NCBI GenBank assembly: GCA_000708835.1
Contig: DF237085.1
Span: 1 to 64,000 of the forward strand
Direction of reading: 5' to 3'
DNA length: 64,000 bases
Origin: Klebsormidium nitens
Taxonomy: Eukaryota; Plantae; Klebsormidiophyceae
Below the pieces are notes generated by a model that had not been told where the DNA came from, did no database searches, and worked only from the letters and a program-made list of their open reading frames with translations. The position numbers and the translations under genes are program-made. Below are positions 1 through 20,482 of the stretch, piece by piece (the stretch's first letter is position 1; each line of letters starts with the position of its first letter).

Positions 1-995
1 CCATCGCGACCCGGGACGTATGGCGGCGGGGGATCTCGCGGCGCTCCCCCGCGTTTACCCCGACCTCTCGGTTGTACCGCTCCAGCACTCCAACGTCGAT
101 CTTCTTCAGAGACGCGAGCTCCTCCGCTGAGTAGATGCCCACCATGTGGTCCAGCAGCTGCGGGGAGCTTCCCTCGACGGGGAGCGGGGGCCGGTCCGAC
201 CCCCTCTTTTGAGAGTAGAGCATCCGGAAGCACTTGAACTTGGCGAACACAGAGGGGTCCCAGATCAGCTTGGGGCCTCTCTGGGGGTCGGGCGTATGCC
301 AGAGGTACTGAGTACTCGTCTCAGTGCAAGAGATGCGCGGAGAGGTTCTTCTGAAAGTGCTCAAAGGCCTTCTTGTACTCGTTGCGGGCGTGAAAGTCCT
401 CGAGGTAGTATCCGCGCAACAGCTCGTGAGTGCTCCACTTGTACCCGCCGTCGGCCGCGTCCCCGTGCGCCTCGCTGCACTCGAACCGGATGCTCTCGGG
501 TGGGATGCCCATCACGTCCACCAGAAAGGCGTCTCTCACTTCGTCCATGTGCCTCTTGTACCGCTCGAAGGCCCCTTCCACCCTGCTTGCCGTCCGCAGG
601 TCGATGTCCGCGTACAGCTTGGTCGGCAGGCCTTCGGTCAAGCCCTCGTATAGATTGGGGTGGCCGAGGCTCATCTCCTTGCGGCGCGTGACGTAGTCCT
701 GCAAGGCGGACGGGTCGCGGATGCTGCCGTACTTTTTCGCCCCCGAGTGCTTCGACACGTCGCAGACGATCAAGATACGGTCTTCGCCAGCCGCCATCGC
801 CCGTCGGCACTGCTCCAGCGGCTTTTCCGTGGTGAACCAAGACTGCCCCGCGGCGTCGGTCTTCGGTCGTGACTGCACGCACATGCTCACGTCCTGACGC
901 TTGCTGTTGGTTGCCGCACAGTCATCTTCGTCTGCGGAGCCCCCCATGGTGTCCTCGATGCTCTCGCCCCTTGCGTCGGACGTTGGCTGCTGCAA
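1..995 (-). pseudogene. AEP/PrimPol-family primase(-polymerase) domain, intronless, one in-frame TGA, runs off the left window edge
   Basis: ORF 321..995 has NLYEGLTEGLPTKLYADID (motif I DxD) and KWSTHELLRGYY (motif II His). Reading through TGA 321-323 in the same frame gives DEYSVPLAYARPQRGPKLIWDPSVFAKFKCFRMLYSQKRGSDRPPLPVEGSSPQLLDHMVGIY (motif III, D..V...FR....K), open down to base 1. Confidence 0.75.
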
Positions 996-1134
996 AGAGT
1001 CGAAGCGACCATTGAACGTCCACGTGCACGAGGCCAGCAGGGGGTGCGTCGAGCCGGCATGATGGGGCCGATTGGCTTACTGACTGGGTCCCTAAGCCAT
1101 CACTCCTGGGCAAGGACCCCGACCGATTGCTGGC

Positions 1135-1522
1135 CTGCGAGCGAGCGCATGGCCCTCCGCCATTCCTCCTCCTGCCAAAGACTCATCAGTAGATTTTTGT
1201 CACCTATCTAGTCCTATAGTCTATATACTTCTTCGCAAGCATCTACTGATTTTTTTGGATTTCACGCCCTCTCACGCTGGAGCACGAAGCGAGCCTCCTA
1301 CCTTTGTGCAAAACTCTGAACACCTTGAACAGCTAGCCAAACTCTCCCATGTCAATTTGCGAGCTAGCGCATGGTCCCCCACCTTCCTCCTCCTGCCAAA
1401 GACTCATCAGTAGATTTTTGTCACCTATATAGTCCTATAGTCTATATACTTCTTTGCAAGAATCTACTTATTTTTTTTGACCTCACGCCTCTCACGCTGG
1501 AGCACGAAGCGAGCCTCCTACC
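1135..1522 (-). repeat. Two tandem ~221-bp-period units, each with a ~65-bp inverted-repeat core (H1 1185-1250, H2 1406-1471)
   Basis: Near-identical cctcctcctgccaaagactcatcagtagatttttgtcacctat...caag.atctact.att...ctcacgctggagcacgaagcgagcctcctacct occurs twice. Confidence 0.9.
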
Positions 1523-1758
1523 TCGGGGTTTTCCTCACGCGTGACGAGCCAGTCCCGCAACGTCGATCGCTCCTGCTTGATTGGGGCAGTGTCGTCGGCT
1601 CCGATGCGTGCGGCCATGTCTGCCATGCAGCTGATCAAGGGGCCCGGCTTGCTGACGGGGCCGGTGCGCATAGCTTCGATCTCGGCCGCCCTTTGCACCC
1701 CATAGGCGCGGAGGCCCTCTCTGTTGTTGGCGATCAGCTCCGCGGCCTGCTCGCTCAT
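1492..1758 (-). CDS. Small intronless hypothetical ORF (88 aa)
   Basis: ATG-started, helical-looking composition (MSEQAAELIANNREGLRAYG...). No recognisable domain; the end overlaps the repeat unit. Confidence 0.25.
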   Translation of the reverse strand: MSEQAAELIANNREGLRAYGVQRAAEIEAMRTGPVSKPGPLISCMADMAARIGADDTAPIKQERSTLRDWLVTREENPEVGGSLRAPA

Positions 1759-2332
1759 GGCGGGAGTATGCTCGACTTGTGGGTGTGCGCGTCTGTGGAA
1801 GAGTGTGGAGGATAGTCAGATGGTCCTGTTTTGTGAGACATGATACATAATGATTCGGAAGCCGACTGTACAGATCCAGATAATCGCAAATGGGTTTTCA
1901 GAACAGGTACAACACGAGCAAGGGGGGGGACGGATTGGTACATGCCGCAATGCCTTACTGGCATCCGTAAGTACCAACAAATGAGGGGAAGGCAATAGCG
2001 CTTTTGCTGGGGGCTTTGCCCCACCCTTCAAGCGAAGCGGTCGAGAGGCTGGAGGCAGAGGCTTCATCTGCCTTGCTCCTGGTCTGGCCGGGTCTGCGCC
2101 TCGGTCCTCCAGTTGACTTCGACTCGCGGCAGAACCTGCAGGTGTGAAGGATTGTGTTCAGAAAAGATGCACGGAGTGACTCGCGTGCCACGAGTGCGTG
2201 GGCAAAACCCACGAGCAAAGCAATGATGGCGGGTATTTGAGGTTCAGCAGGTCTGCAGAGCGGTGAGGCTTCCCAGAACGGTCATTGCGTTCAATATCAG
2301 TCGGACATTTCCGTTGGTGAACATACATATCG

Positions 2333-2533
2333 ATGACGAAGTCCGTGGAAGAGGTGAAGCTCGCAAAGGCCGCAAAAGCAAAAGCTCTCCGAGCCCTGAA
2401 AGCTGAGCAGAGGATCAAGGCTATGATTGCATTATCGGAGAAGAGGGACGAGCTGGAAGGCAAGGACATCGAACGAGAATGCATGGAACAAGATGAGGCT
2501 CGCAGACTCGCCGTTAGCTGTGGGCACAGGTGA
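2333..2533 (+). CDS. Small charged coiled-coil ORF or exon
   Basis: MTKSVEEVKLAKAAKAKALRALKAEQRIKAM...; ends at CAG|gtgagg, which may be a splice donor rather than a stop. Confidence 0.25.
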   Translation: MTKSVEEVKLAKAAKAKALRALKAEQRIKAMIALSEKRDELEGKDIERECMEQDEARRLAVSCGHR

Positions 2534-2564
2534 GGGGAGCTCTCCAGTCTGAATGATTGGAAAG

Positions 2565-2900
2565 CTATTTGTCGTCTTGTTTTTGAGCGTTTGTTGCAGG
2601 CGACGCATGCCTCACCGCTTTTGATGATCGGGCGGAGGTCAGGCACCCCGGCAACGTGCTCTGCTTGTGGGCGTCATTCGGTTGAGGGGGTGGCTTTTCC
2701 CAGATGATGTTGCCGTCTTCCATCAAATTCCAGTGCCGAGGGTCGAAATTCACATCCGCCTCTAAGACATCGTCGAGCGTGTCCTCCAAGCTCGCTCAGC
2801 CGAGTTCGCGTCTCTGACGGGCTCGAACGGCTTTCAGCTCGGCCTTCTGCTCGGCCATGAAGGTTGCGGCCTTTCTGCTCGCCTCAGCGGTGTGCGTCGG
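2565..2900 (-). pseudogene. Hypothetical ORF interrupted by one in-frame TGA at 2796-2798
   Basis: Track ORFs 2796..3011 and 2565..2789 share a frame: MAEQKAELKAVRARQRRELG*ASLEDTLDDVLEADVNFDPRHWNLMEDGNIIWEKPPP. Confidence 0.3.
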
Positions 2901-3952
2901 CAGTTGAGTCTTTGTTGTGCGCCTGTTGAATGCACTAATAACGATTAGTTCCAGAGTGCAGAAAGAGCGAGGCCTGCTTGCGATGGTCTTGTGTGGGCTT
3001 GCAAAATGCACGAGCTGCTTGGCGATCGGGAAGGAGCCGACGAAGCCCTAGCAAAGCCCCTACCTGCTGCGTTTTGGGGCGGGAAGCTGGGTAACGCTAC
3101 TGTCTTCCTCGTCCAAGCGTGATTCACTGTGGATATCCGCACCATCTCCTTCCTGCAAGCAAGGAGCGCAAGGCCACAGGTTAGACTCACGGATGATGGG
3201 ATCCTGCAGCGGCGAGGGCGATAGCGCTTTGCTAGGGGCTTCGCCCGGCCCCCAAGCGAAGCGCTATGGGAGCTTGGCCATCCACGAGCACGGGATCGGA
3301 GCTCACCGGAGGTAGTGGAGGGCCGCCACCCGGAGTTTTGGAGGTGCCGCCCACCCTGGGGGGGCTTTCTCGGAGCGGCTGATTGCTGAAGCGCGGCGCG
3401 ACCTAGAAGGCGTGGGGTTCCTTAAAATCAGTAGATTTTTGCGAACAACTCTATAGACTATAGGACCATATAGATTGCAAAATTCTACTGCCGCGTCTCT
3501 GGCGTAAGGAGGAAGGAGCAGGATCACACGCTAGCTTGCAAATCCTATCTGGAGGCTCAGACGAAACTCCAAAGGCATCCCACACAACTCGCAAGCAACA
3601 GCTACCAGGCCTTCAGAAAGGTCCATCATTGTTGACCAGTAGAGTGTGCTGGCCTTGCAGCAATGGGGACGGATGCCGAAGGAGCTCACCAAAGGCTGTG
3701 GAGAGCCGCCAGCTGGAGCCTCGGAGGTGCCCGCCCCGGGGGGCCCCTCTCGGAACCGCAGAAGGCCAGAATATGGCATGACCTGGAAGGCGTGGGGTTT
3801 CCAATCAATCAGTAGATTTTGCGAACAACTATATAGACTATAGGACTATATAGATTGCAAAAATCTACTGATGAGTCTCTGGTTGGAGGAGGGAGGAGCA
3901 GAACCACGCGCTAGCTCGCAAATCCTGTCTGGAGCCTAGGCTCAGACGAAAC

Positions 3953-4471
3953 TCAAAATGCATTCCGCACTACTCGCAAACAACAGCTGCCAATCGTTCG
4001 GAAGGACCATGCATCAATCATCGATGGATGTTTGGAAGGCAACGCAGGATCCGAGAGAAAGCTCACCGGCGTTCGCATCCGACCGCCATCTGACGAGTCA
4101 AGACTGCCTGTAGAGGAGCCCTAGGAGAGCGATGCGCTGTTGCAGGATGATGGAGGAGTGACCGCAGACATGGCCTGGAAGGATACATAAATTGATTGAG
4201 CCTAGCTCTGCTATCAGGGAGTAGAGCTGAGAAGCAAGAGCATGACTGGAGCTGGCCTTGTGATGGAGCTGATGCCAGTCAGAAACCTTAAGTTGACGAT
4301 GGAGCTGACCCGCGAGCTCTTGCAGCTTACCTGGTAGCTGGCATGGGCGCTCATTTCTTGTGCAGCATCATGGTGAGCCTCTCCGGTCGGAGTTCCTGAT
4401 AGGCGCAGATTTCTTTGGAACTCTGCAAACTGTTCCACTGACTGCAAGCCATGGAGCGGTCGTGCTGCCAT
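3953..4471 (-). pseudogene. Two-exon orphan gene, copy 1, premature TAG at 4121-4123
   Basis: Exon 4471-4331 (MAARPLHGLQSVEQFAEFQR...ASYQ|gtaag) and exon 4174-3953. The paralog at 10974-11508 has GAG at the equivalent codon. Confidence 0.35.
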
Positions 4472-4667
4472 GCTTGCGATGAGCGCTGAGATACAAAGCT
4501 TTGAGGCTGGAGTGCTGCACTTGCGATGATGCTTTTGTTGCGCCCCTGAGCGGCTGGTCGGCAATTGAGGTTTGAATACAGAGGCGGGAAAGTGCTGAGT
4601 TGGAGCACCTTCCCCACCAATCGGAGCCTTCTGGAACATGTCGGCTGCCCGCCGAGCGTGCCAAGTC

Positions 4668-5509
4668 CCTGTCTGGCATAAACTTCTTGTCCCCTAGAAT
4701 GTTCAGATAAATATGTGCATCGGACGGTTCAGAACCAGAGGAAGTGACATCGACGGTCACTTCCGCTGAATCCCCGGGCACTTTCAGCGGTTGCCCAAGA
4801 CTGACAAAGTTGCTCAGTAAAACCAAAGTCCCGGAAGTCAAGGCCTAAACCGGAACACCTACAGCCAGTAATTTGAAGCAGAAGACTGCCGCAATGGCTG
4901 CCTTGTGCTCAGGGCTTGAGGAGGCAGGGACGGGCTGTGGGGGGAGAGTAGAAGGTCTTTCTCCACAAACTTTGCATTTCAGCAAGCTAGGATTGCTTTT
5001 TGTAGAGCAGTCTTGCCGTTGAGATTGCAAAATTTGATGTATAGTTGCCCCGGCGACTTTCAACAAAACCTCCATTGCGCCTCCGAGGCTCCTTTTAGGG
5101 TTGAAAGGCACATTTTGGATTTGGGGGGAGAATGTGCATCAAATTTACCTTTGAAAGCAGCTGGTATTCAATTTATAGGTTGCACATAGCTTCAGGTTGC
5201 CGTTGGGTTTGAGAAATTTTGGTCATGGGTGCTGCTCCCAGCTCATTTCAGCCATGTCGGCAGCCATGGCGGCCAGTCTGAGGTGCTGGGCAAAATAACA
5301 ATTTTGGACTTCACCACTTTCGGGCGCTGTCCCTCCTTTCTGCGACCTTTAGGCGGGGGATGGACTCAGCCTTCTGTTCAGCAAAGGCAATCGGCGTACC
5401 GTCCGATCTTAGAAAATAGAACGATTTCAACCGTTGGATGCCCGGACTGCGCCCGGTACGCCAAAAATTACTTAAGCAGGCCAGCGGACGGAGGTTCATG
5501 CCAGACAGG
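4668..5509. mobile_element. Non-autonomous DNA transposon, 842 bp, 19-bp imperfect TIRs, 5-bp TSD AAGTC
   Basis: Left end cctgtctggcataaacttc (4668), right end gaggttcatgccagacagg (5509). AAGTC at 4663-4667 and 5510-5514. The paralogous site near 11717 has a single AAGTC and no insert. Confidence 0.9.
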
Positions 5510-5599
5510 AAGTCAGCATCGGCGGCCCGCCGGGGAGGAAACCGCAACCGTTTTTGAAAAACCGTCGACGCACGATCGAACGGTCGGGAATCGACGCGG

Positions 5600-5775
5600 T
5601 CTGCAGCGGACGGTCCCGAAAAAATCAGTCGATTTTTGCAAGTAATCACTATATCTGAAGGATTATATAGTTGACAAAAATCGACTGCGGTGGGTACGGT
5701 CCGCTCTTGCAGTGGGGGGCGAACACTCGCCTTGTTCTCCCGCAGATTCTGCCCCCCGGCCGGTTTAGCTCTTAC
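5600..5775 (+). repeat. Block B with hairpin H5 (5624-5688); inverted copy at ~11960-12135
   Basis: Reverse complement matches cagagcgggccgtacgcaccgcagtcgatttttgtcaactatataatcctt...gggaccgtccgctg. Confidence 0.9.
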
Positions 5776-6841
5776 ACCCCCATGAGGACCGATCACGAGG
5801 TCTGGCGGCGCGTTTGATGACATTTAAACCCGTCTAGATTTGTCGCGTTCGGGTTACTGTACTATTTGAGTGTCATATAACCCCACGGGTTAGCTGAAAT
5901 TTGGAAGAGGGTTACTGACTAAGGTCGCCGGAATCAAAAGCACCGCCCCGGTGTGCCAATTTGATGAATTTTTTCCAGTGCTCCGGATATTCAAATGGCC
6001 AGCCCCGTAGAAGCGGTAATGGCTGCGGTAAAGGATTAAGACCGGCAGTCGGTGGAGGTTTGGCATTTCGACGGTGCTGAGTCTCGATTTTTGCGGACAG
6101 TCGGACCCTCGGGCCGGGGGGGACACGCGTCAGCTATCGGGCGGCTGAAAATCAGTGTTTGCCATAGCTTTGCCCGGGACCGGCATTCTGCTGGCTACTG
6201 GGCGTTTTCATCGGCAGAAGTTGCTTGCGGACCGGCCCGGTATATTCTTTACCGGTCTCTTCGAAGGCAGAACTGATCTTCTCTCTGTTATTTGAGCCGG
6301 TCCCCTGTTTATTCCACCGGCATTTGTGCCGGTACCGAGCCGGCTCGGTGCCTTCGGCACCGGCCGAATTCGACTTTTTACCGGCCAGGTCCAGAGCCAT
6401 TAGCGGCTCGTGGCAAACACTGCTGAAAATAAGGTTGAAGTTCATTTGGTTTGCTGCTGATTGGGACCAACAAACCACTGAGTGTCACTCTAGCTTGAAG
6501 TTGAACGCTGACACAGCACTCAGACCGGCTTCTGATGAGAGAACTGAGAAGATTATCCAGCAGATCAAGGTCAGCCGAAGCTACCTAGTTGGATTTGCAG
6601 CTTTCAGAGGGGGCATAACCGTGACAAAACTGCTATCGTTTGAATTTCCAAAGTTCAGCGCCCCGGTATTAAGAATTGAATTTTGCAGCTCCTATAGGTA
6701 TCTATTGTGTAGTTAAGGAGAAGGCAGAGGCAAAGGGAGCTAGGAGGAATTTGGGCACCTTGTAGAATTGAATCAGGCAGGTCCTAACGTTGGCTGCAAT
6801 AGAAGGACAGAGCAGAAAGCAGCTCAGTTTAAGAAAGGACA

Positions 6842-7576
6842 CAATGGCAAGCTCATTTGGTGGATTCGGTGGCTTTGGTGGAAACCCGAGAATGATGACT
6901 TTCTACGAGAATCGGCACAGAAGGCCGGCGGCGGTAGCAAGATGTGAAAAAGCAGCAAGCAGTAACAGTACCACTATTCGTGTACCTACTTCTGTGATTG
7001 AGACGGGTGTATCGTGGGTAACTCTTGGCATTGGTGGCGCATCGGTGGCATTGATGGCCTACGGGGCAAATTCGTTTGTAAGTTTTGATTTCACAAGCTT
7101 CACATGGTAAAGTGATTAAGAAAACTAACTCATTGTTGCAGAGTTCCAACAGTTTCAAAAATGACAAAAGTATTGAATAGTTTGAAGAGCAATGTAGATT
7201 GCCAGTGTTCAACTTCCAACTGATAGATAGCATCACTGCCATGAAGTGTATGCCTGGTGACTTGGACGATTTCTGCCATTCAGGATTGTTTAAGCACTGC
7301 TCTGTCAATCGTCCATTTGAGAAGCTCTGTATGTCTGCCGGCAAGTGAGGATCAAACGTTAGAAGTTGAGTGATCGTCTCCCTTGATATCTTGTCCATGT
7401 TTTGACAGGTACGAGACGTGACCTTTAAGCATGTGAAACCTCTGGAGACTGACCTGAAGAAGGTTGGCAAGGATGTCCGCAACATGCAGACAGATGTCAG
7501 AATGATAAAGATGCAGATGAACCACAACCAAAAGCTCATCCTTGAAAAGTTTCAAAACCTGGAAGTGCAAGTGAAG
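6842..7576 (+). CDS. Putative orphan gene: Gly-rich N-terminus, one hydrophobic helix, then a coiled-coil exon (3' end unresolved)
   Basis: MASSFGGFGGFGGNPR...VSWVTLGIGGASVALMAYGANS followed by a gtaagt donor. Exon ~7409-7576 (cag|VRDVTFKHVKPLETDLKKVGKDVRNMQTDVRMIK...VK|gtaatg). Confidence 0.4.
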
Positions 7577-9559
7577 GTAATGAGAGTTATTCCTTCCTGT
7601 TTGACATTCTGAACAAGCAGAAGCCCTTTGGTCATACTTCTGCTCTGCATCGAAGCAGATCAACATTGCAAGTGGTTTCTCCAACATGGTTACTTCGTCA
7701 ATCCTGCTCTTACTGTTGCCACCACCATGCATAATCGCTTCTTGCATATGCTCATGCAATTGAATGTGCTGCAGATTTTGTTAAGAATAGAATCTGCTGC
7801 AGATTTTGTTATATGTAGATCTGCTAACATGTGAGCATGCTCTACAAGGGGCGAAATAGATGGCTCGAGGTAAGCTGGTTTTTAAGACTGATCGTTTCTG
7901 GTCAAAGTTCTGCGTGCTTGGTATGATTGCTGCTTTCTGGCATCTAACAATCACGAGTGAAATAACGCATCTGGATGCATGAACCATCTGCAATAATTAG
8001 CCAAGCAAAGTTCATAGACGCAAACTTGAATTGAGCTTATTGATGACCAAGACACCGGTGTACCTTGCTTGTGCAAGGCTTTGAGATATGGTCAATTTTG
8101 GAAGCAAAGAATGTCTTCCTTTGGCTTGCAACTTTGTCTTCGCATGAATGTTCTTCAGATTGAGCTGCTGCGTTGTTTCTGCAGGACTTGTCAACGTAAA
8201 TATTCTCAAAAAATTTGACAATACTTTTGACAAGAATAACAGTAGATATAGCTACGTGAAGTCCTAACCCAGGCCCAACACTTCTCCAATGACAAGAGAC
8301 TTTGCTAGGTTCTTGTTCAACATCCTCTGAAGGCAGTAGCAAAGGGAACCAGAGTTCACATGCTAGGATGCTGAAGGACAAGATGTGACCATGGAAAAGA
8401 GGACAATTCCTAAAGACATTCATTTGTTTGATATTGAAAGAGAAAGATTGCATGTATAGCTAGATATGAAGACTTGCAGTGCCGTGTTCTAACAAAGAAC
8501 TTTCTGGTGTTTCTTCTTTTTAAACAAGCACCAAAAGGTGAACGTCTCTGACTTCACCTTTTCAAATCTGAATGCCACTGCAACTCGTCATGCCTGCTTT
8601 CATGCAATCTTGATATATGGATCTTGAATCATGCACGACATCGCGGACCTCACCCACAAGCGCATCCTTAAGGGCAAGGCCCAAGACGAGTAGCTTTAGC
8701 ATTTGAGCTACATAGCCAGATAACGAGTCCGCCACAGCAGTTTGCCATAACGCCACCCTGCCTTTGTTACTCATGCATAGCATAGCTTACGAGACATACT
8801 CAGATACATTCCCCTCCTATGCACGATTATGTAGTTTTGCAGCGACGTGATGCTTGATTTCGTTACGAAGTTACAACTTGGACATGACATTGCAGCCGTA
8901 GCAAGCTGCAGTGTCAGCTCATCGTATTGCGTCTCACCGGAGCATTGCCCAATGGCTCAACGTGGCTCAGGGTGTATAAAAGCAAGTGACCATCTCGAAT
9001 AAGTTAAGGGAAAAGGAAATTGAACGATAGCACTTGGTCCCTAACTCAAGGGGAGTCGAACATATCGCATATGGTCCTAGATGCAAACTGCTCGAATTCA
9101 GATCATGTCAGTTGCAATCATACGAAATTATTCAGGTGAAGCCCGATTGAATGTTAAATTCCATAAGTGTAACTGAGGTCATATGGTATGGTCTCTTTAC
9201 AAAAACGCAGTAGCCAAACAGGCCATAGGCTTCTCATGGCACACATGTGGACGTGTTCTTATGCGTTTTTTCAATGCTTTTGAATCCTGATACTGCCTAA
9301 GGTACTCGAGCAATATTGAGGATGAAGTCTAGCTAAAGTAAGAAATTTTGTAGAGTTCGTACCTAAAGCTACGCTTGACCGTCGCTAGAGCTTGGGTCCC
9401 CCGGAGACGTGGCTGCTAATCGGTAGCCCCTGCGAAGGAGACCGCCCCCGGGTATCTGGTGGACTTGGAGCTGCAACCGCCGGACTGTGCCGCAGCTGCC
9501 GCTGCACATAGAGACCGAGCGGTTCAGTCAAGAGTTGCCACTTGGCACGCGGTCCTCCA

Positions 9560-10090
9560 CCACCCTTCCGGCGGACTGTCAATCCGTCAAAATTTGCAAG
9601 GATATTAGTACTGAAGATTTAGAGTATAGACGCAAGTTTTGACTGATTCAAGTTCCTGCACCGCGGCAGTCCTAGCTGGAGAGGGGCGTGTGCCAGCTGG
9701 TGATTTGCAAGAATGGAGGCATGCCACACGTGCTCGCACAGAGTTTGCAAAAAGTCAGGATTGCCAGCTGGCGTGCGGTCCTCCGCCATCCTTCCGCTTG
9801 ACCGCCATCAGTCAAAATTTGAAAGGATATTAGTACTAAAGATATAGAGTATAGACGCAAGTTTTGACTGATTCCAAGTTCCTGCACCGCGGCAATCCAA
9901 GCTAGAGAGGGACGCGTGCCAGCTGGCGGTATGCCTCACATGCTCGCGCGGAGTTCGCAGACAGTCAGTACTTGCGAGCTAGCGCGCGGAAGCTCCTCCA
10001 TCCTTCTGGCCGACGGTCACGCAGTCGAGTTTTGCATGGTATATAGTTCTAAAGATATAGAGTATAGTCGCAAAAATCGACTGCTGTCCA
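9560..10090 (-). repeat. Three tandem ~220-bp units with hairpins H6 9582-9647, H7 9807-9872, H8 10021-10084
   Basis: Repeated tcaaaatttg.aaggatattagtact.aagat.tagagtatagacgcaagttttgactgatt; the reverse complement matches H9/H10. Confidence 0.9.
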
Positions 10091-10134
10091 AGCTGCTGCA
10101 CTGGGTCGCTTGCCAGTTCCGAGCCTGTTGCTCC

Positions 10135-11805
10135 ATGGATGTCTGCGCCATCGCCTTCCTGCAAGCAAGGAGTGCAAGGCCACACGTTAGACTCACAAAT
10201 GATGGGATCTTGCAACAAGACTTTAATTGGCTTGCTGGGAGTCTCGGGTGGAGGGAGCGATAGCGTTTTGTCAGGGGTTAAGTTCGCCCCGCCCCCAAGC
10301 GAATCGCCATGAAAGCTAGCGCATCCACGAGCATGACTTGGAGCTCACCGAAGGCTGTGGATGGCCGCCAGCTGGAGTCACAGAGGTGCCCCCCCCGGGG
10401 GGCCCCTCTCGGAGCGGCAGAATGCTGGAGGGCGGCGCAACCTCGGAGGTGAGGGGTTCCAAAAAAATCAGTCAATATTTGCGACTAGACTCTATATCTT
10501 TAGTACTAATATCCTGACAAATTTTGACTGCGTGAGTCTTTGGCAGGAGGAGAGATGGAACAGAACCGCGCGCTAGCTCGCGAATCCTGTCTGGAGGCTC
10601 CAAAGGCATCCCACACAACTCGCAAACAACAGCTGTCAGCCCTTCGGAAGGGTGTATTGACCAGTCGAGTGTGCTTGCCTTGCAGCATGCCTAAGATTCA
10701 CTAGCTCACCAAAGGCTGTGGATGGCCGCCAGCTGGAGTCTCGGAGGTGCCCGCCCAGGGGGGGCTCTCTCGGAGCGGCAGAAGGCCAGAACACGGCGCG
10801 ACCTGGAGGCACGGGGTCCCAAAGAATCAGTCAAAACTTGCAAGTAATCTCTATAGTCTTTAAAACAATATACCTGACAAATTTTGACTGCGTGAGTCTT
10901 TGGCAGGAGGAGGGAGGAGCAGGACCACGCGCTAGCTCGCAAATCCTGGCTGGAGCCTAGGCTCAGACGAAACTCAAAATGCATTCCGCACAACTCGCAA
11001 ACAAAAGCTGCCAATCCTTCGAAAGGACCGTGCATCGATCATCAATGGATGGTTGAAAGGCAACGCCGGATCCGAGAGAAAGCTCACCGGCGACAGCATC
11101 CGACCGCCGTCGGACGAGTCCAGACTGCCTTCGGATGAGCCCTCTGAGAGCGATGCGCTGTTGCAGCATGATGGAGGAGTGACCGCAGACATGGCCTGGA
11201 AGGATACATAAATTAGTTGAGCCTAGCTTTGCTATTATGAGCACCAAATCCCAGAGTAGAGCTGAGAAACATGAGCATGACTGGAGCTGACCTTGTGATG
11301 GAGCTGATGCCAGTCAGAAACCCTAGGTTGGCGACGGAGCTGACCCGCGAGCTCAGTTGAAGGTCACCTGGTAGCTGGCATGGGCGCTCGTTTCTTCCAC
11401 AGCATCATGGTGAGCCTCTCCGGTTTGAATTCCTGATATGCGCATACTTCTCTGGAACTCTGCAAATTGTTCCGCCGAGTGCAATCCATGGAGCGGTCGT
11501 GCTGCCATGCTTGCGGCAATGAGCGTTGAGATGCAAAGCTATGAGGCGGGCCGCATGCTGTACCTGCGATGATGCTTTTGTTGCGCCCCTGAGCGCTGGT
11601 CGGCAACAAAGTTTGAAGAAAGAGGCAGGGAAGTGCTGATTCAAAGGCTCTTTCCCCACCAATAGGAGCCCAATGGAAGCTTCTGGAACATGTCGGCGGC
11701 CCGCGGAGCGTGCTTGAAGTCAGCTTCGGCGCCCCGCCGGGAAGGAAACCGCAACCGCTTTTAAAAGACCGTCGACGCATAATCTAACGGTCGGGAATCG
11801 ACGTG
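10135..11805 (+). repeat. Copy 2 of the ~1.6-kb duplication; hairpins H9 10467-10531 and H10 10826-10891
   Basis: Collinear with 3130-5600 minus the 4668-5509 insertion. Confidence 0.9.
10974..11508 (-). CDS. Two-exon orphan gene, copy 2 (~120 aa, apparently intact)
   Basis: Exon 11508-11368 (141 nt, MAARPLHGLHSAEQFAEFQR...ASYQ|gtgacc) joins in phase 0 to exon 11195-10974 (ttccag|AMSAVTPPSCCNS...RNAF*). Exon length and splice sites are conserved in copy 1. Confidence 0.4.
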
Positions 11806-11858
11806 TTTGAGCGTTGCGACAGTGCGGTCGTAGTGTGTACTGCTGCATGTACTAACAG

Positions 11859-11932
11859 CGTAGTTTTTGACGCTCACCCGTAGTTTTTGACGCTCGCCCG
11901 TAGTTTTTGACGGTCTGAGATAGATTTTGACG
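11859..11932 (+). repeat. 21-bp direct tandem repeat x3 plus one degenerate copy
   Basis: cgtagtttttgacgctcacc / cgtagtttttgacgctcgcc / cgtagtttttgacggtctga / tagattttgacg. Confidence 0.9.
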
Positions 11933-11959
11933 TATTCCAAGTATGATTCGGTATCTGAC

Positions 11960-12135
11960 ACAAGTAAAAGCTAGACCGGCCGGGGGGGGGGGGGGGCAAA
12001 ATCTGCGAGAAAACAATGCGCGTTTTTACCAGAGCGGGCCGTACGCACCGCAGTCGATTTTTGTCAACTATATAATCCTTAAGATATAGTGATTACTTGC
12101 AAAAATGGACTGAAATTTTCGGGACCGTCCGCTGA
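11960..12135 (-). repeat. Inverted copy of block B with hairpin H11 (12050-12113) and a long G run
   Basis: Reverse complement of 5600-5775. Confidence 0.85.
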
Positions 12136-13318
12136 AGCGCAAACGGCACATTGTCCGGCGGCAGTTTGAGCTTACAATTGAGTGCGGGGGGTAGCTGATC
12201 CCGTCACCCGGCAGCGTACCCAAAAAGGCCGGGGTCCGATCGTACGGAGCCCCAGCCACGTGGTTCGGCGCGCCCGGTTCGAGTTTGGTTAGAATTGAAG
12301 GTTGCGCCAACTGGATTCGGTAGGCTGTGGGCGAATGCGCGGCCGCCCTATCAGTCGCGCGGCCGCCCGGGCAGGCTGAGTCTTGAAAACTTTGTTGAGG
12401 CTGAGGTCCAGGTCCGTGAGGAGATCGTGGAAAAGGCGCAGGAAGCAGCATCTTCTGGTGATGTCAACAGCAGTTGGTGTCTGATTAGATTGTTCAGCAT
12501 CTTATGATGTACTGGTCCTGAGACTGGCAGGTTTTTGATCCTTTCAACTCTTAGGTCAAGAGGGCCTTTCATCCTTTGCAAGCCAGCTTGCCTTGAGGAG
12601 CGCATGACAAACCGGTGTGGTGGGTGCTTCAATGAGACCAATCTTCTATTCTGTACTGCCGCGGAATTTTGAATCCTCAGATTGAGGAGTGGTGTATGTA
12701 TCACAGTAGACTGTTGTTCTGAAACTTTTTTACATGAATAAAGCGAGGGGCAAAATCCATAATGTGATCAACCAAGTGTCATCATGTAACTATGCCACCC
12801 TTTCTTCGCTTAATCTGTACTACGAGTGGTGCTCAAGTTGAATCCTACTGGCAGCCAAACTCAGAACCTTTGAAAAGACAATGTTTGATTTCACTTACCT
12901 GTTAAGAACAATCTTCTGAGTCCTCTCTGAATCAAGTTTTACAAGTGTCAACCTCTTCATCAAAGCATGCAAAGTTTAAGAGCCAGCCTTTTTCTTCAAA
13001 GGCTCCTTTGTGACATTCAATCACAATCCCTGTACTCTGCAGCTGATACCATTCTCCTCATCTTTTTGCAGGTCACAAGGACACAAACTTCATTCGGATC
13101 TAAGGAGACAGGGAAGGAGGGCACCGCGCACTAGTTGAATCATGTCCAGCGCTCTGCACTGCTGTGGGTGTGGTGCTGTCAGCAGCTCCGTCTTCATCGA
13201 CTCTCACCAGAACTCAAGGTCCAAATTGCAAAATACTCAGAAGGCAATACTAGTGCCCCTGAGATTGCCAGAGGGCCTTTGGAGACAAGCGGGGGGTGGT
13301 AGACACGCCAGCGCAGCG

Positions 13319-18176: not shown

Positions 18177-19283
18177 TCAGACCCACATATCAACTATCGC
18201 TTCTTCTTGAAGAAGACTGAGGACCCTTCCAAGCTCGACATACGCATCGTCTTCAAGCAGATTCTTGTTTGGATCAAGGCGATAGAAACGCAGAACGAGC
18301 TCCCTGAAGAGCCCCCATGGCATCAGCCCAATCTCGACAGCAAAATCGTTGCAGGAATTAAACGTTGCTCGCTCAGTCGCGTTTTCTGTGGTCTGATGCC
18401 GCAAGTCTTCGTCCTTGTAGCACCGCAATCGCATGACTGCTTGACAGCTACGGGTGTCGCCCAATATCATCGCTTGCAGAAAGCTGCGGTCGTCCCTCAG
18501 CTCTTCTGGGACATCAACAACAGCTGACGCTTGCAGGCGGCGATACCATCTCCCGCCAACGGGGTGCACGAAGCCCCACTGAGTTGGCGCTTCGCACTCC
18601 AGCAAACGCAGTACCTTCCCGTCTTTCTTGCGGAAAAGCTTCCAAGAAAAGGACAGCAGGGATAGCTCTTCAAGATCGTCGTCGTGTATTTTAAACAATT
18701 CTCCGTTAGTTGGAGGAATCACTGAGATTTCTGATGTCCGATCCAGGAAGCGCAGCAGCTCATGACAAACGGTTCTGCCCACAGGCCCATGCAGCAGCTT
18801 GACTACTGCCTTGCAACCACGATTTTCCGAGTGGTTGAACTCCCAGTCTTCTTGGCAGCCTTGGAAGCTCCTGTCCAGCTCGCTGGCCTCAGCTGAACAA
18901 AACAGTCGGCCTTCCCCTTCCCAGTAAATGTCCATCAGCATGACGTAGCCGGAGAGATCTGAAACGTCATCTGAGCTTGAAGCTCCCTCCTCATTTCTGG
19001 ACGCTTTATCACAAGCACCTCGCCTCCCACTTAGTCTTCTGTAGAGCTGCTTGTAGGCAGAGCTTTTGTTCTCGCCTGAGCGCACCCCATAGAGCCTCTG
19101 AACAAGCTCCTTTGCTGGAGATGTCGTGATAGACGGGTTTAGGCGCTCGCACCATGTCTTCCAGAGCGTACTCTCGTCCACAGCTTGCCTCAGCGCCACC
19201 GATTGAAGAGCCAGGCTGCACGCTTCTTTGGCCGTGAGGAAGCCTAGCAGGTGATCAAAGAGAGGGGCGTCAAGCGTCTCCAT
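18177..19283 (-). CDS. F-box protein, intronless body (the track ORF extends upstream to 19448 via GTG)
   Basis: LDAPLFDHLLGFLTAKEACSLALQSVALRQAVDESTLWKTWC fits an F-box. The C-terminal MDIYW...LSFSWKL segments resemble plant F-box families (inference). Confidence 0.75.
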   Translation of the reverse strand: METLDAPLFDHLLGFLTAKEACSLALQSVALRQAVDESTLWKTWCERLNPSITTSPAKELVQRLYGVRSGENKSSAYKQLYRRLSGRRGACDKASRNEEGASSSDDVSDLSGYVMLMDIYWEGEGRLFCSAEASELDRSFQGCQEDWEFNHSENRGCKAVVKLLHGPVGRTVCHELLRFLDRTSEISVIPPTNGELFKIHDDDLEELSLLSFSWKLFRKKDGKVLRLLECEAPTQWGFVHPVGGRWYRRLQASAVVDVPEELRDDRSFLQAMILGDTRSCQAVMRLRCYKDEDLRHQTTENATERATFNSCNDFAVEIGLMPWGLFRELVLRFYRLDPNKNLLEDDAYVELGRVLSLLQEEAIVDMWV

Positions 19284-20482
19284 CTGGTCTTGCTCAGACT
19301 CTGGAGCCTCTGAGCTGTGTGTTCGTTCATCTATATGCCTGACTGTATGCCTGACGCGACACTTCGAACGCGGCCGCGCGGGCGTCACAATGGACTCAAA
19401 ACCCTGCCCCCGCGGACGGCTGACGTAACAATCTCGGCAACTCACCACTTGCCACGTCAGACGGAGTCAAAACCTGTGTTTCAATAACACACTTACGTGC
19501 CCTTTTGCATCACGCTTTGACCTTAGAGTTTGCTGAGCTACTTCTGTTGAGAGTAAGATTGCTTCGTGCGCCAGAGAGCCTCAGTGAGGCACTCTACAAA
19601 GCGCTGGCCATCGCTGTCAGCGGTGCGCTGAAAGAGCAGATGCTTCCTGTTTTAGTTTACTTTCCAGGCTGCCTGCTTGGAACAAAAGATATCGTGGATC
19701 ATCTTTCAAATTCATCTGCCGTCCAGATTAAAACTATGCCGACATCAATCTCGGAGTGCCACGGAGTCGTTCTGTGTACGGATGGCAGTCGAAAATTCCC
19801 TTGCTTTCGACATCAATCTTGAGGCGTCTAGCAACGTCCAAAGGTCACGCTGGCGGCCGCGATTGGGGCAATGGGCGTCACCTTTTTCGAGGTAAACCAC
19901 TGAACGTGATTCCGGCTTTTGCATTTGCACGCGGGTTTTAATGATGCATGCCATCAGAGACAAGCTCGAAGATCTTCAAACAGTATGTCTGCAAGGAATC
20001 CGTCTAGCATACCGCCGGTTGATCAGCGGCTGGCCTTGCACATACTAAAGGATGAGCATGAGTCTTCTGTGAGATTGCATTCAAGCAAGATATCAATGGC
20101 GCCGGGAGTTACGTGCGCCGCCATGAACACGTGACTTACGATACGAAGAGCTTTCGAGCGATTACTGAACACGTGACTTCAATAAGAAGAGCTTTCGAGC
20201 GGTTACTTGCACGCAGAAAGATTGCGGGGTATAATATGAAGCGAGTACGTGAAACTGTTGGTTGAGGCCTATGAAGCTTTGCACTTGAATTTCTTAAGCA
20301 GCTAACTGTCATGATACCTGTAGGAGGCTCATGGTAACGTAGTCCAGATGGTTGCTCGCAGGAGGTTTCACAGGCACCTCATTCTTACAGTACAATGCGT
20401 ATGTCACCTTCCATGTGGAGTGTCAGTTTGTCGCTGCACTATTATTTTGCCTTCCTCGAAACACCGTTCTTGAAAACTCTGA

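Follow-up and report, generated by a model that had tools for sequence, protein, structure and literature searches.

Covarying palindromic sites in the replication-gene region of a multi-copy Klebsormidium element and their possible role as cis-acting DNA

The first 64,000 nucleotides of Klebsormidium nitens contig DF237085.1 (the window, 64 kb of assembly GCA_000708835.1) contain eleven hairpin sites, H1 to H11, in which inverted 13-bp arms flank an AT-rich spacer of nearly constant length. These sites belong to a previously undescribed, integrated element of ~21 kb, virus-like or self-replicating, that occurs in multiple copies in Klebsormidium and of which the window holds two partial and degraded copies, A and B. 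By analogy with viral replication origins and baculovirus hr sequences we favour, at somewhat less than even confidence, the reading that the hairpins are a DNA-level cis-element of the element's replication or expression. In support, the hairpin family is specific to the element and confined to the third of it that carries an AEP-primase/UL9-like-helicase gene.

All eleven sites lie within 1185-12114, as established by inverted-repeat search, pattern search and direct reading. A covariance model trained on them recovers precisely those eleven across the window, with no copy in the other 52 kb, which is host DNA. They are the eleven sites reported, at the same places, by an initial annotation of this DNA, and the strand calls of the model reproduce the orientation string given there (--+++---++-). 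Covariance scores are 71-83 bits on the best strand against 24-34 bits on the opposite strand, and the cores are therefore asymmetric. An arm-gap-arm pattern has five exact matches where shuffles predict 0.00. The arms are extended by A-T pairs to 15 bp in about half of the copies, and the spacer, 36 nt in all window copies except H4 (35 nt) and H10 (37 nt), has a GC content of ~31% in surroundings of 47-59%. Every one of the eleven copies folds better than its own shuffles (z from -2.5 to -6.4); a scan of the window for Rfam families and tRNAs returned no family at gathering score and no tRNA.

The arms come in the three paired variants that the initial annotation described: AG/CT in H1 to H4, CG/CG in H5, H8 and H11 (with one mismatch in H11), and CA/TG in H6, H7, H9 and H10 (with one mismatch in H6). 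Copy A holds H1 (1185..1250, minus strand, 77.7 bits), which has a class P core and lies upstream of the AEP exon; H2 (1406..1471, minus), its tandem duplicate at a 221-bp period; H3 (3427..3492, plus), with a class U core in the orientation opposite to H1 and H2; H4 (3808..3872, plus), also class U, the tandem partner of H3 at a period of ~381 bp and carrying a 1-nt deletion in its left arm; and H5 (5624..5689, plus), with a class T core and perfect 13-bp arms, the hairpin closest to the left end of the element and ~270 bp inside it. Copy B holds three units of a class A array, H6 (9582..9647), H7 (9807..9872) and H8 (10020..10085), all on the minus strand, followed by the class U sites H9 (10467..10532, plus) and H10 (10826..10892, plus) and the class T site H11 (12049..12114, minus). 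A duplicated segment (3112..4661, plus strand, with its second copy at 10118-11713, 79% identical over 1628 columns) makes H9 the positional partner of H3 and H10 that of H4.

The arms of the family covary. Among the eleven window copies, pairing holds in 86.6% of arm cells, and both sides have changed in 6 of the 15 pairs (17 cells), a result that none of 500 shuffles reached; when the partner is slid by one column, pairing falls to ~40%. The same holds in alignment A2, for which six element copies supplied 47 hairpins, 46 of them distinct: over the distinct copies, pairing is seen in 87.5% of arm cells, 8 pairs show double changes (66 cells), and again 0 of 500 shuffles did as well. Watson-Crick pairs make up 535 of the 597 cells of the 13-bp arms. 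The claim that symmetry is maintained is thereby borne out, and the sequences indicate active maintenance of arm complementarity, through compensatory changes at no fewer than four positions and through the exchange of whole cassettes. Such covarying arms are not predicted by a plain binding site for a dimeric protein, another suggestion of the initial annotation, taken by itself.

Length is constrained as well. The spacer is exactly 36 nt in 43 of the 46 copies. Gauged by distances between landmarks, the hairpin measures 62 nt in 38 of 43 cases, whereas the next stretch of ~39 nt is spread evenly over 36-41 nt, so that constancy of length is held much tighter here than in the neighbouring sequence. 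Several asymmetric positions of the spacer are conserved at 90% or above, and the orientation of the core relative to its flanks is fixed in 47 of 47 copies. What had been described as hairpins within diverging flanks needs correction: the flanks are homologous between copies, and the repeated unit is a module of ~150 nt of which the hairpin is the core. Modules run from a GTGAG-like motif ~18 nt upstream of the hairpin to an end ~62 nt downstream of it. All are oriented as the genes are and start at this splice-donor-like GTGAG, which has decayed in the class U and class T modules.

We infer that the level of action is DNA and not sense RNA. The sense strand of the 13-bp arms has no bias towards wobble pairs (14 G.U cells against 26 A.C cells) and the antisense RNA folds more stably than the sense RNA (-19.6 versus -17.4 kcal/mol, p=0.002); DNA is favoured because of these two results and because lengths are fixed and the conserved spacer is asymmetric. 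As the AT-rich spacer opens, the arms would pair within one strand to give a hairpin or cruciform, and this structure, or the dyad itself, could be used by the element's own replication or expression machinery. The modules, which stand upstream of the AEP-helicase gene, in its introns and beside the left end, would multiply by tandem duplication and be homogenised by short-tract gene conversion.

The genes that accompany the sites are replication genes, as the initial annotation had supposed they might be. The AEP (PrimPol-like) gene remnant at 1..1076 (minus strand), ~110 bp from H1, is truncated by the edge of the window and carries one frameshift and one in-frame stop relative to an intact 412-aa relative, P0002. 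The open reading frame beside H1 has 14 close relatives in two JGI samples (76-98% identity). The contigs of these relatives revealed a conserved element in multiple copies, and the distant relatives that bear a name are all K. nitens proteins. The AEP profile matches human PrimPol (5l2x, 7jk1) at E=4.2e-9. An AlphaFold model of the protein (pLDDT 75.6) retrieves PrimPol in Foldseek (E=8e-10, TM 0.64-0.76 on target) and further matches poxvirus D5/E5, the herpes simplex virus (HSV) helicase-primase complex and the PrimPol of African swine fever virus, and one relative has a weak match to Pfam AEP_C962R. On the strength of profile and predicted structure, we assign the gene beside H1 to the AEP primases of the PrimPol/UL52/D5 clade. 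In sister loci it is accompanied by a helicase that matches Pfam Herpes_ori_bp (profile positions 50-227 of 820, E=1e-10 to 6e-9), and the element encodes a second primase-helicase, a protein of 929 aa with Prim-Pol and DUF5906 matches; the large primase-helicase is 94% identical to K. nitens KFL_014790010. Arm pairing is better conserved than the flanks, and the sites are not the repeat of a catalogued transposable element lacking a link to replication.

Copy A (1..5953, minus strand) comprises the left ~6 kb of the element, the remainder lying past the start of the window. Its homology with other copies reaches its left limit at ~5953, beyond which the flanks differ between copies. The sister locus L003 represents the same locus as copy A at 98-99% identity and runs on into the helicase and Prim-Pol genes. 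Copy B (9444..12137) is a deletion derivative from which the AEP gene is missing, the class A array (H8-H6) being fused straight to the class U/T region (H9-H11). Read from its left limit, the element begins with a single class T module; one to three of class U, on the opposite strand, come next, then one or two of class P, and then the AEP gene. There follow an array of two to four class A modules, the helicase gene with one class I module, open reading frames without known relatives (ORFans), the 929-aa Prim-Pol/DUF5906 protein and more ORFans. The right limit of homology, defined by two copies only, lies ~6.5 kb beyond the 929-aa protein.

Sister loci carry 8-9 hairpin copies each, all between the left end and the helicase intron. 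No modules occur to the right of that intron (14 kb in L012), in the 15.5 kb of L010 that start downstream of the helicase, or in the host flanks of sister loci. Module clusters are limited to the left ~7.5 kb of the ~21-kb element. A comparison of the element's two ends gave no inverted repeat. Scans against Pfam, PDB and PHROGs left most open reading frames of the region and of the right half of the element unmatched, and found no capsid, integrase, transposase or recombinase (tyrosine recombinases included) among the element's frames that were scanned. An exact hairpin pattern of 25 specified bases, which as a control matches 4 copies in every fetched locus, has no match in the JGI metagenome collection and none in IMG/VR, a search that diverged families would escape. 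The Klebsormidium literature on introners, endogenous elements or palindromes yielded no description of the hairpin family. A survey of K. flaccidum listed phycodnavirus-like core genes, and the D5-type helicase is absent from its list (PMC5294986).

More distant relatives of the element have palindromes of their own. The families of L014 and L015, both reference scaffolds of K. nitens, encode an AEP protein 33-38% identical to that of the window family and lack the window-type hairpin. L014 instead has three palindromes of ~57 bp placed 0.5-1.2 kb upstream of the AEP exon (8830-8887, ~9305-9363 and 9408-9466), and one arm-like half-site at the helicase donor. One arm position of the L014 palindromes varies on one side only and is uncompensated. 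L015 has two tandem palindromes of ~58 bp in annotated intron 1 (1391-1450 and 1540-1597), the first of them 12 nt after the donor. The palindromes of both families have AT-rich spacers and stand at places equivalent to those of the window family. Such a common build in unrelated sequences speaks for a function or, failing that, for some recurring process linked to the AEP-helicase gene.

Among the closest known systems are the herpesvirus origins oriS and oriL. At the HSV-1 origin, inverted protein-binding boxes flank an AT-rich spacer whose length matters, and an intrastrand hairpin that forms on unwinding is bound by the UL9 helicase (PMC12543377). The sites described here likewise have inverted arms around an AT-rich spacer of fixed length, with a role for the arms as binding boxes that is conjectural, and they are likewise set among replication genes, in this case a Herpes_ori_bp helicase and an AEP of the UL52/PrimPol clade. 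By contrast, the host is an alga and the element integrated and multi-copy; each element carries ~9 sites where herpesviruses have 2-3, with a 36-nt spacer, unrelated arm sequences and modules that occur in introns. The helicase differs from UL9 in matching only the N-terminal core of the profile.

Baculovirus hr sequences serve a dual role as enhancers and origins. Like them, and by analogy only, the modules form clusters of tandem units, each with an imperfect palindrome, which vary in copy number and are probably homogenised. Unlike them, the clusters occupy one third of the element and are not dispersed, the palindrome is twice as long with a long AT spacer and unrelated sequence, and no IE-1-like protein was found, the other element frames tested being without a family match. 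The comparison with origins and hr palindromes drawn in the initial annotation is nonetheless a reasonable hypothesis, and an origin- or enhancer-like function of the hairpins would be in keeping with it. A more specific version seems to us possible, though less likely than not: that the palindromes serve as cognate origins or control sites for undescribed ~21-kb self-replicating, integrating elements of streptophyte algae, built on a spliced AEP-primase/UL9-like-helicase initiator and a second primase-helicase, that each sub-family's palindrome co-evolves with its initiator, and that the initiator gene houses the sites in its introns, where gene conversion keeps them uniform.

Several observations weigh against a replication or control site acting as DNA. 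About nine origin-like sites within 7 kb exceed the needs of an origin. A pure DNA site does not predict that modules should be co-oriented with the genes and start at a GTGAG donor-like motif, and in sister copies and an annotated K. nitens relative the palindromes stand 12-18 nt after a real intron donor. The helicase aligns with the UL9 Pfam profile over the N-terminal core alone, a C-terminal DNA-binding domain of UL9 type was not detected in it, and its downstream exons have no family match. Much of the pairwise change in the arms travels with the copying of whole cassettes, and independent compensatory events are few, about four, a small number, yet above chance. Finally, one arm position has C opposite A, a mismatch, in 21 of the 46 copies.

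The position of the modules near splice donors suggests a different account, rather unlikely in our estimation, in which they would form an intronic or 5'-leader RNA hairpin just past the AEP-helicase donors that tunes splicing or intron retention. Co-orientation with the genes and the GTGAG-like start fit this account, as do the introns of the sister copies, which were defined from sequence and gene models, the exons being translated and searched separately. In L003 the class I module lies inside a 189-nt GT..AG intron (9077-9265, phase 0) that joins helicase frames 8390-9121 and 9257-9988; L001 has this intron as well. It splits the helicase between its two RecA-like halves, exon 2 containing what we take, reading by eye from general knowledge of superfamily 2 helicases, to be motifs IV-VI. 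Between the AEP and helicase exons, the class A array occupies an intron that preserves the reading frame; the acceptor of this intron falls ~75 nt before the helicase start codon and restores the frame. Both the donor and an in-phase acceptor were found in L001 and L003; in L007 and L012 only the acceptor was. AEP and helicase are fused likewise in NCBI gene models for two diverged K. nitens relatives, P0030 and P0056, whose introns fall at the equivalent AEP/helicase junction and within the helicase, and the two unrelated palindromes of L015 likewise sit in an annotated intron.

The stop codon of the AEP frame is itself part of the splice donor (L001 ~11235, L003 ~7678, L014 ~10638), an arrangement common to the diverged families. 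Judging from these sequences, a transcript that retains the intron would encode the primase alone, and a spliced one a fusion of primase and helicase.

Other results speak against an RNA hairpin. Besides the missing excess of G.U over A.C and the stabler antisense fold, a 13-bp AT-rich stem around a 36-nt loop is a weak RNA structure, and a fixed loop length is unexpected for a simple RNA stem. Class U and class T modules, whose donor-like motif has decayed, account for 5 of the 11 window copies and stand where no gene or intron can be modelled. None of the window's modules lies within an intact intron, H1 and H2 standing upstream of the AEP exon, H6-H8 forming an orphaned array, and H3-H5 and H9-H11 lying in DNA without an open frame. 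Moreover, the L014 family has the helicase intron in the same position without any hairpin, and the intron must therefore predate the module. A snoRNA- or miRNA-like precursor was also considered and dropped.

A second alternative, which we rate as no more probable than an RNA hairpin, is that the modules are selfish or neutral palindromic repeats that spread locally by tandem duplication and ectopic gene conversion, their arms self-corrected by hairpin-templated repair or inter-arm conversion, and that survive only where they are harmless, in introns and non-coding DNA. Indeed, the cassettes combine three arm types and a few core halves in mosaic fashion, and chimeras whose arms are of two types exist, if rarely. 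For 18 of the 47 copies the nearest relative is within the same element, several times at another position, as in L007, whose class P hairpin matches its class I hairpin at 97%. The flanks of H4 and H10 agree at 81-92%, the hairpins they enclose at only 65%; the H5 and H11 hairpins are 97% identical within a unit that is 80% identical. Because of these mosaics and identities, we attribute much of the paired arm change to the copying of whole cassettes by gene conversion. Array size also varies from 1 to 4 units between element copies. Against this stand the nearest relatives of 33 of the 47 copies, which are positional orthologues, and the failure of the repeat ever to leave the element or even its left third. 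Despite common indels immediately adjacent, the spacer keeps its length and several asymmetric positions, and two diverged families with unrelated palindromes of the same build at equivalent sites are hard to explain by chance.

It is very improbable that the 62-bp palindrome is itself mobile or a recombination target, whether as a miniature inverted-repeat transposable element (MITE), a genome-wide introner or an attC-like site: the arms of 13-15 bp resemble terminal inverted repeats, the units of H5 and H11 are flipped with respect to an adjoining segment that they share, and multi-copy introns are a hallmark of introners, but no target-site duplication was found, every copy sits in homologous flanks with a fixed orientation of the core, the module boundaries have neither target duplications nor terminal or inverted repeats, and no integrase, tyrosine recombinase or transposase was matched among the element frames scanned. 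A true transposon nearby, described below, bears a real insertion signature.

Each of the three forms was rejected on its own evidence. MITEs, such as those derived from Tc1/mariner elements, share with the hairpins a short length, terminal-looking inverted repeats and an AT-rich interior; the hairpins differ in lacking a consistent target duplication and dispersed copies, and in their homologous flanks and fixed orientation. Introner elements, like these modules, place similar sequences in at least two different introns, in sense orientation, with a donor start and stable secondary structure. Unlike introners, the modules are confined to one mobile element, are not spread over host genes, occur outside introns as well, and entered a helicase intron that predates them; there are no copies in the 52 kb of host DNA, which has several intron-rich genes, or in the host flanks of the loci. 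The attC-like cassette or recombinase site proposed in the initial annotation fails in a eukaryotic host with no recombinase found and no cassette open reading frames between sites. The hairpin family falls outside every catalogued class tested.

If the sites are functional, they would provide a compact algal system in which an initiator gene, an AEP primase with an origin-binding-type helicase, and its repeated palindromic targets can be read side by side in many diverged copies, a natural experiment on the co-evolution of dyad-symmetric sites and their readers. They would also extend replication modules of the type found in herpesviruses and nucleocytoplasmic large DNA viruses to integrated elements of the streptophyte lineage ancestral to land plants. 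Whether cis-elements or selfish palindromes, they lie inside spliceosomal introns of the replication gene of a mobile element, which bears on the origin of multi-copy introns. If they are merely selfish, self-correcting palindromes, their concerted evolution mimics structural covariation and calls for caution where RNA or DNA structures are called from covariation.

The modules of the window are arranged in tandem units. The class P pair (1136..1523, minus strand) shares 168 nt at 92% identity. The class U units form a pair in copy A (3298..4010, plus strand, period ~381 bp, 78% identity) and another in copy B (10340..11030, plus, period ~361 bp, 80% identity). The three class A units (9526..10116, minus, period ~220 bp, 77% identity) are homologous to the AEP-helicase intron array of L001, L003, L007, L009 and L012. 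All three forward frames of the class U units are stop-rich throughout, and a reading of these units as repeated exons was dropped. The class T unit of copy A (5601-5775) is inverted in copy B (11964-12137), whereas its neighbour (5509-5596/11716-11803) is direct, a local inversion or rearrangement around the palindrome of H5/H11. Beside H11 is a 20-bp tandem repeat (11859..11912, plus strand, 2.7 copies, 97% matches) built of units that look like one hairpin arm, in direct orientation, and a similar single arm-like motif lies past H5 in copy A (~5829-5846). The arm-like repeat units could be half-sites for the same reader protein, or could be due to chance.

Within copy A, a nested insertion of 843 bp (4668..5510) has terminal inverted repeats of ~19 bp and a 5-bp target duplication. 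It is present in copy A only, missing from the 99%-identical L003 and from all other copies, and by its sequence looks like a recent insertion polymorphism, a non-autonomous DNA transposon unrelated to the hairpins. The window is otherwise eukaryotic nuclear DNA, with split genes for a P-type ATPase, Pescadillo, QPRTase and an amine oxidase. A 28-bp tandem repeat of 2.5 copies (7758-7825) lies beyond the left limit of the element, just within the stretch shared with L003. A tandem duplication (18176-19286/20482-21543, 78% identity over 1.1 kb) covers long open reading frames without a Pfam match, one of them of 429 aa (18180-19466, minus strand). In host DNA near the P-type ATPase gene, a 67-nt inverted repeat (48246-48312/48535-48601, 95.5% identity, arms ~220 bp apart) is possibly a MITE with no relation to the hairpins.

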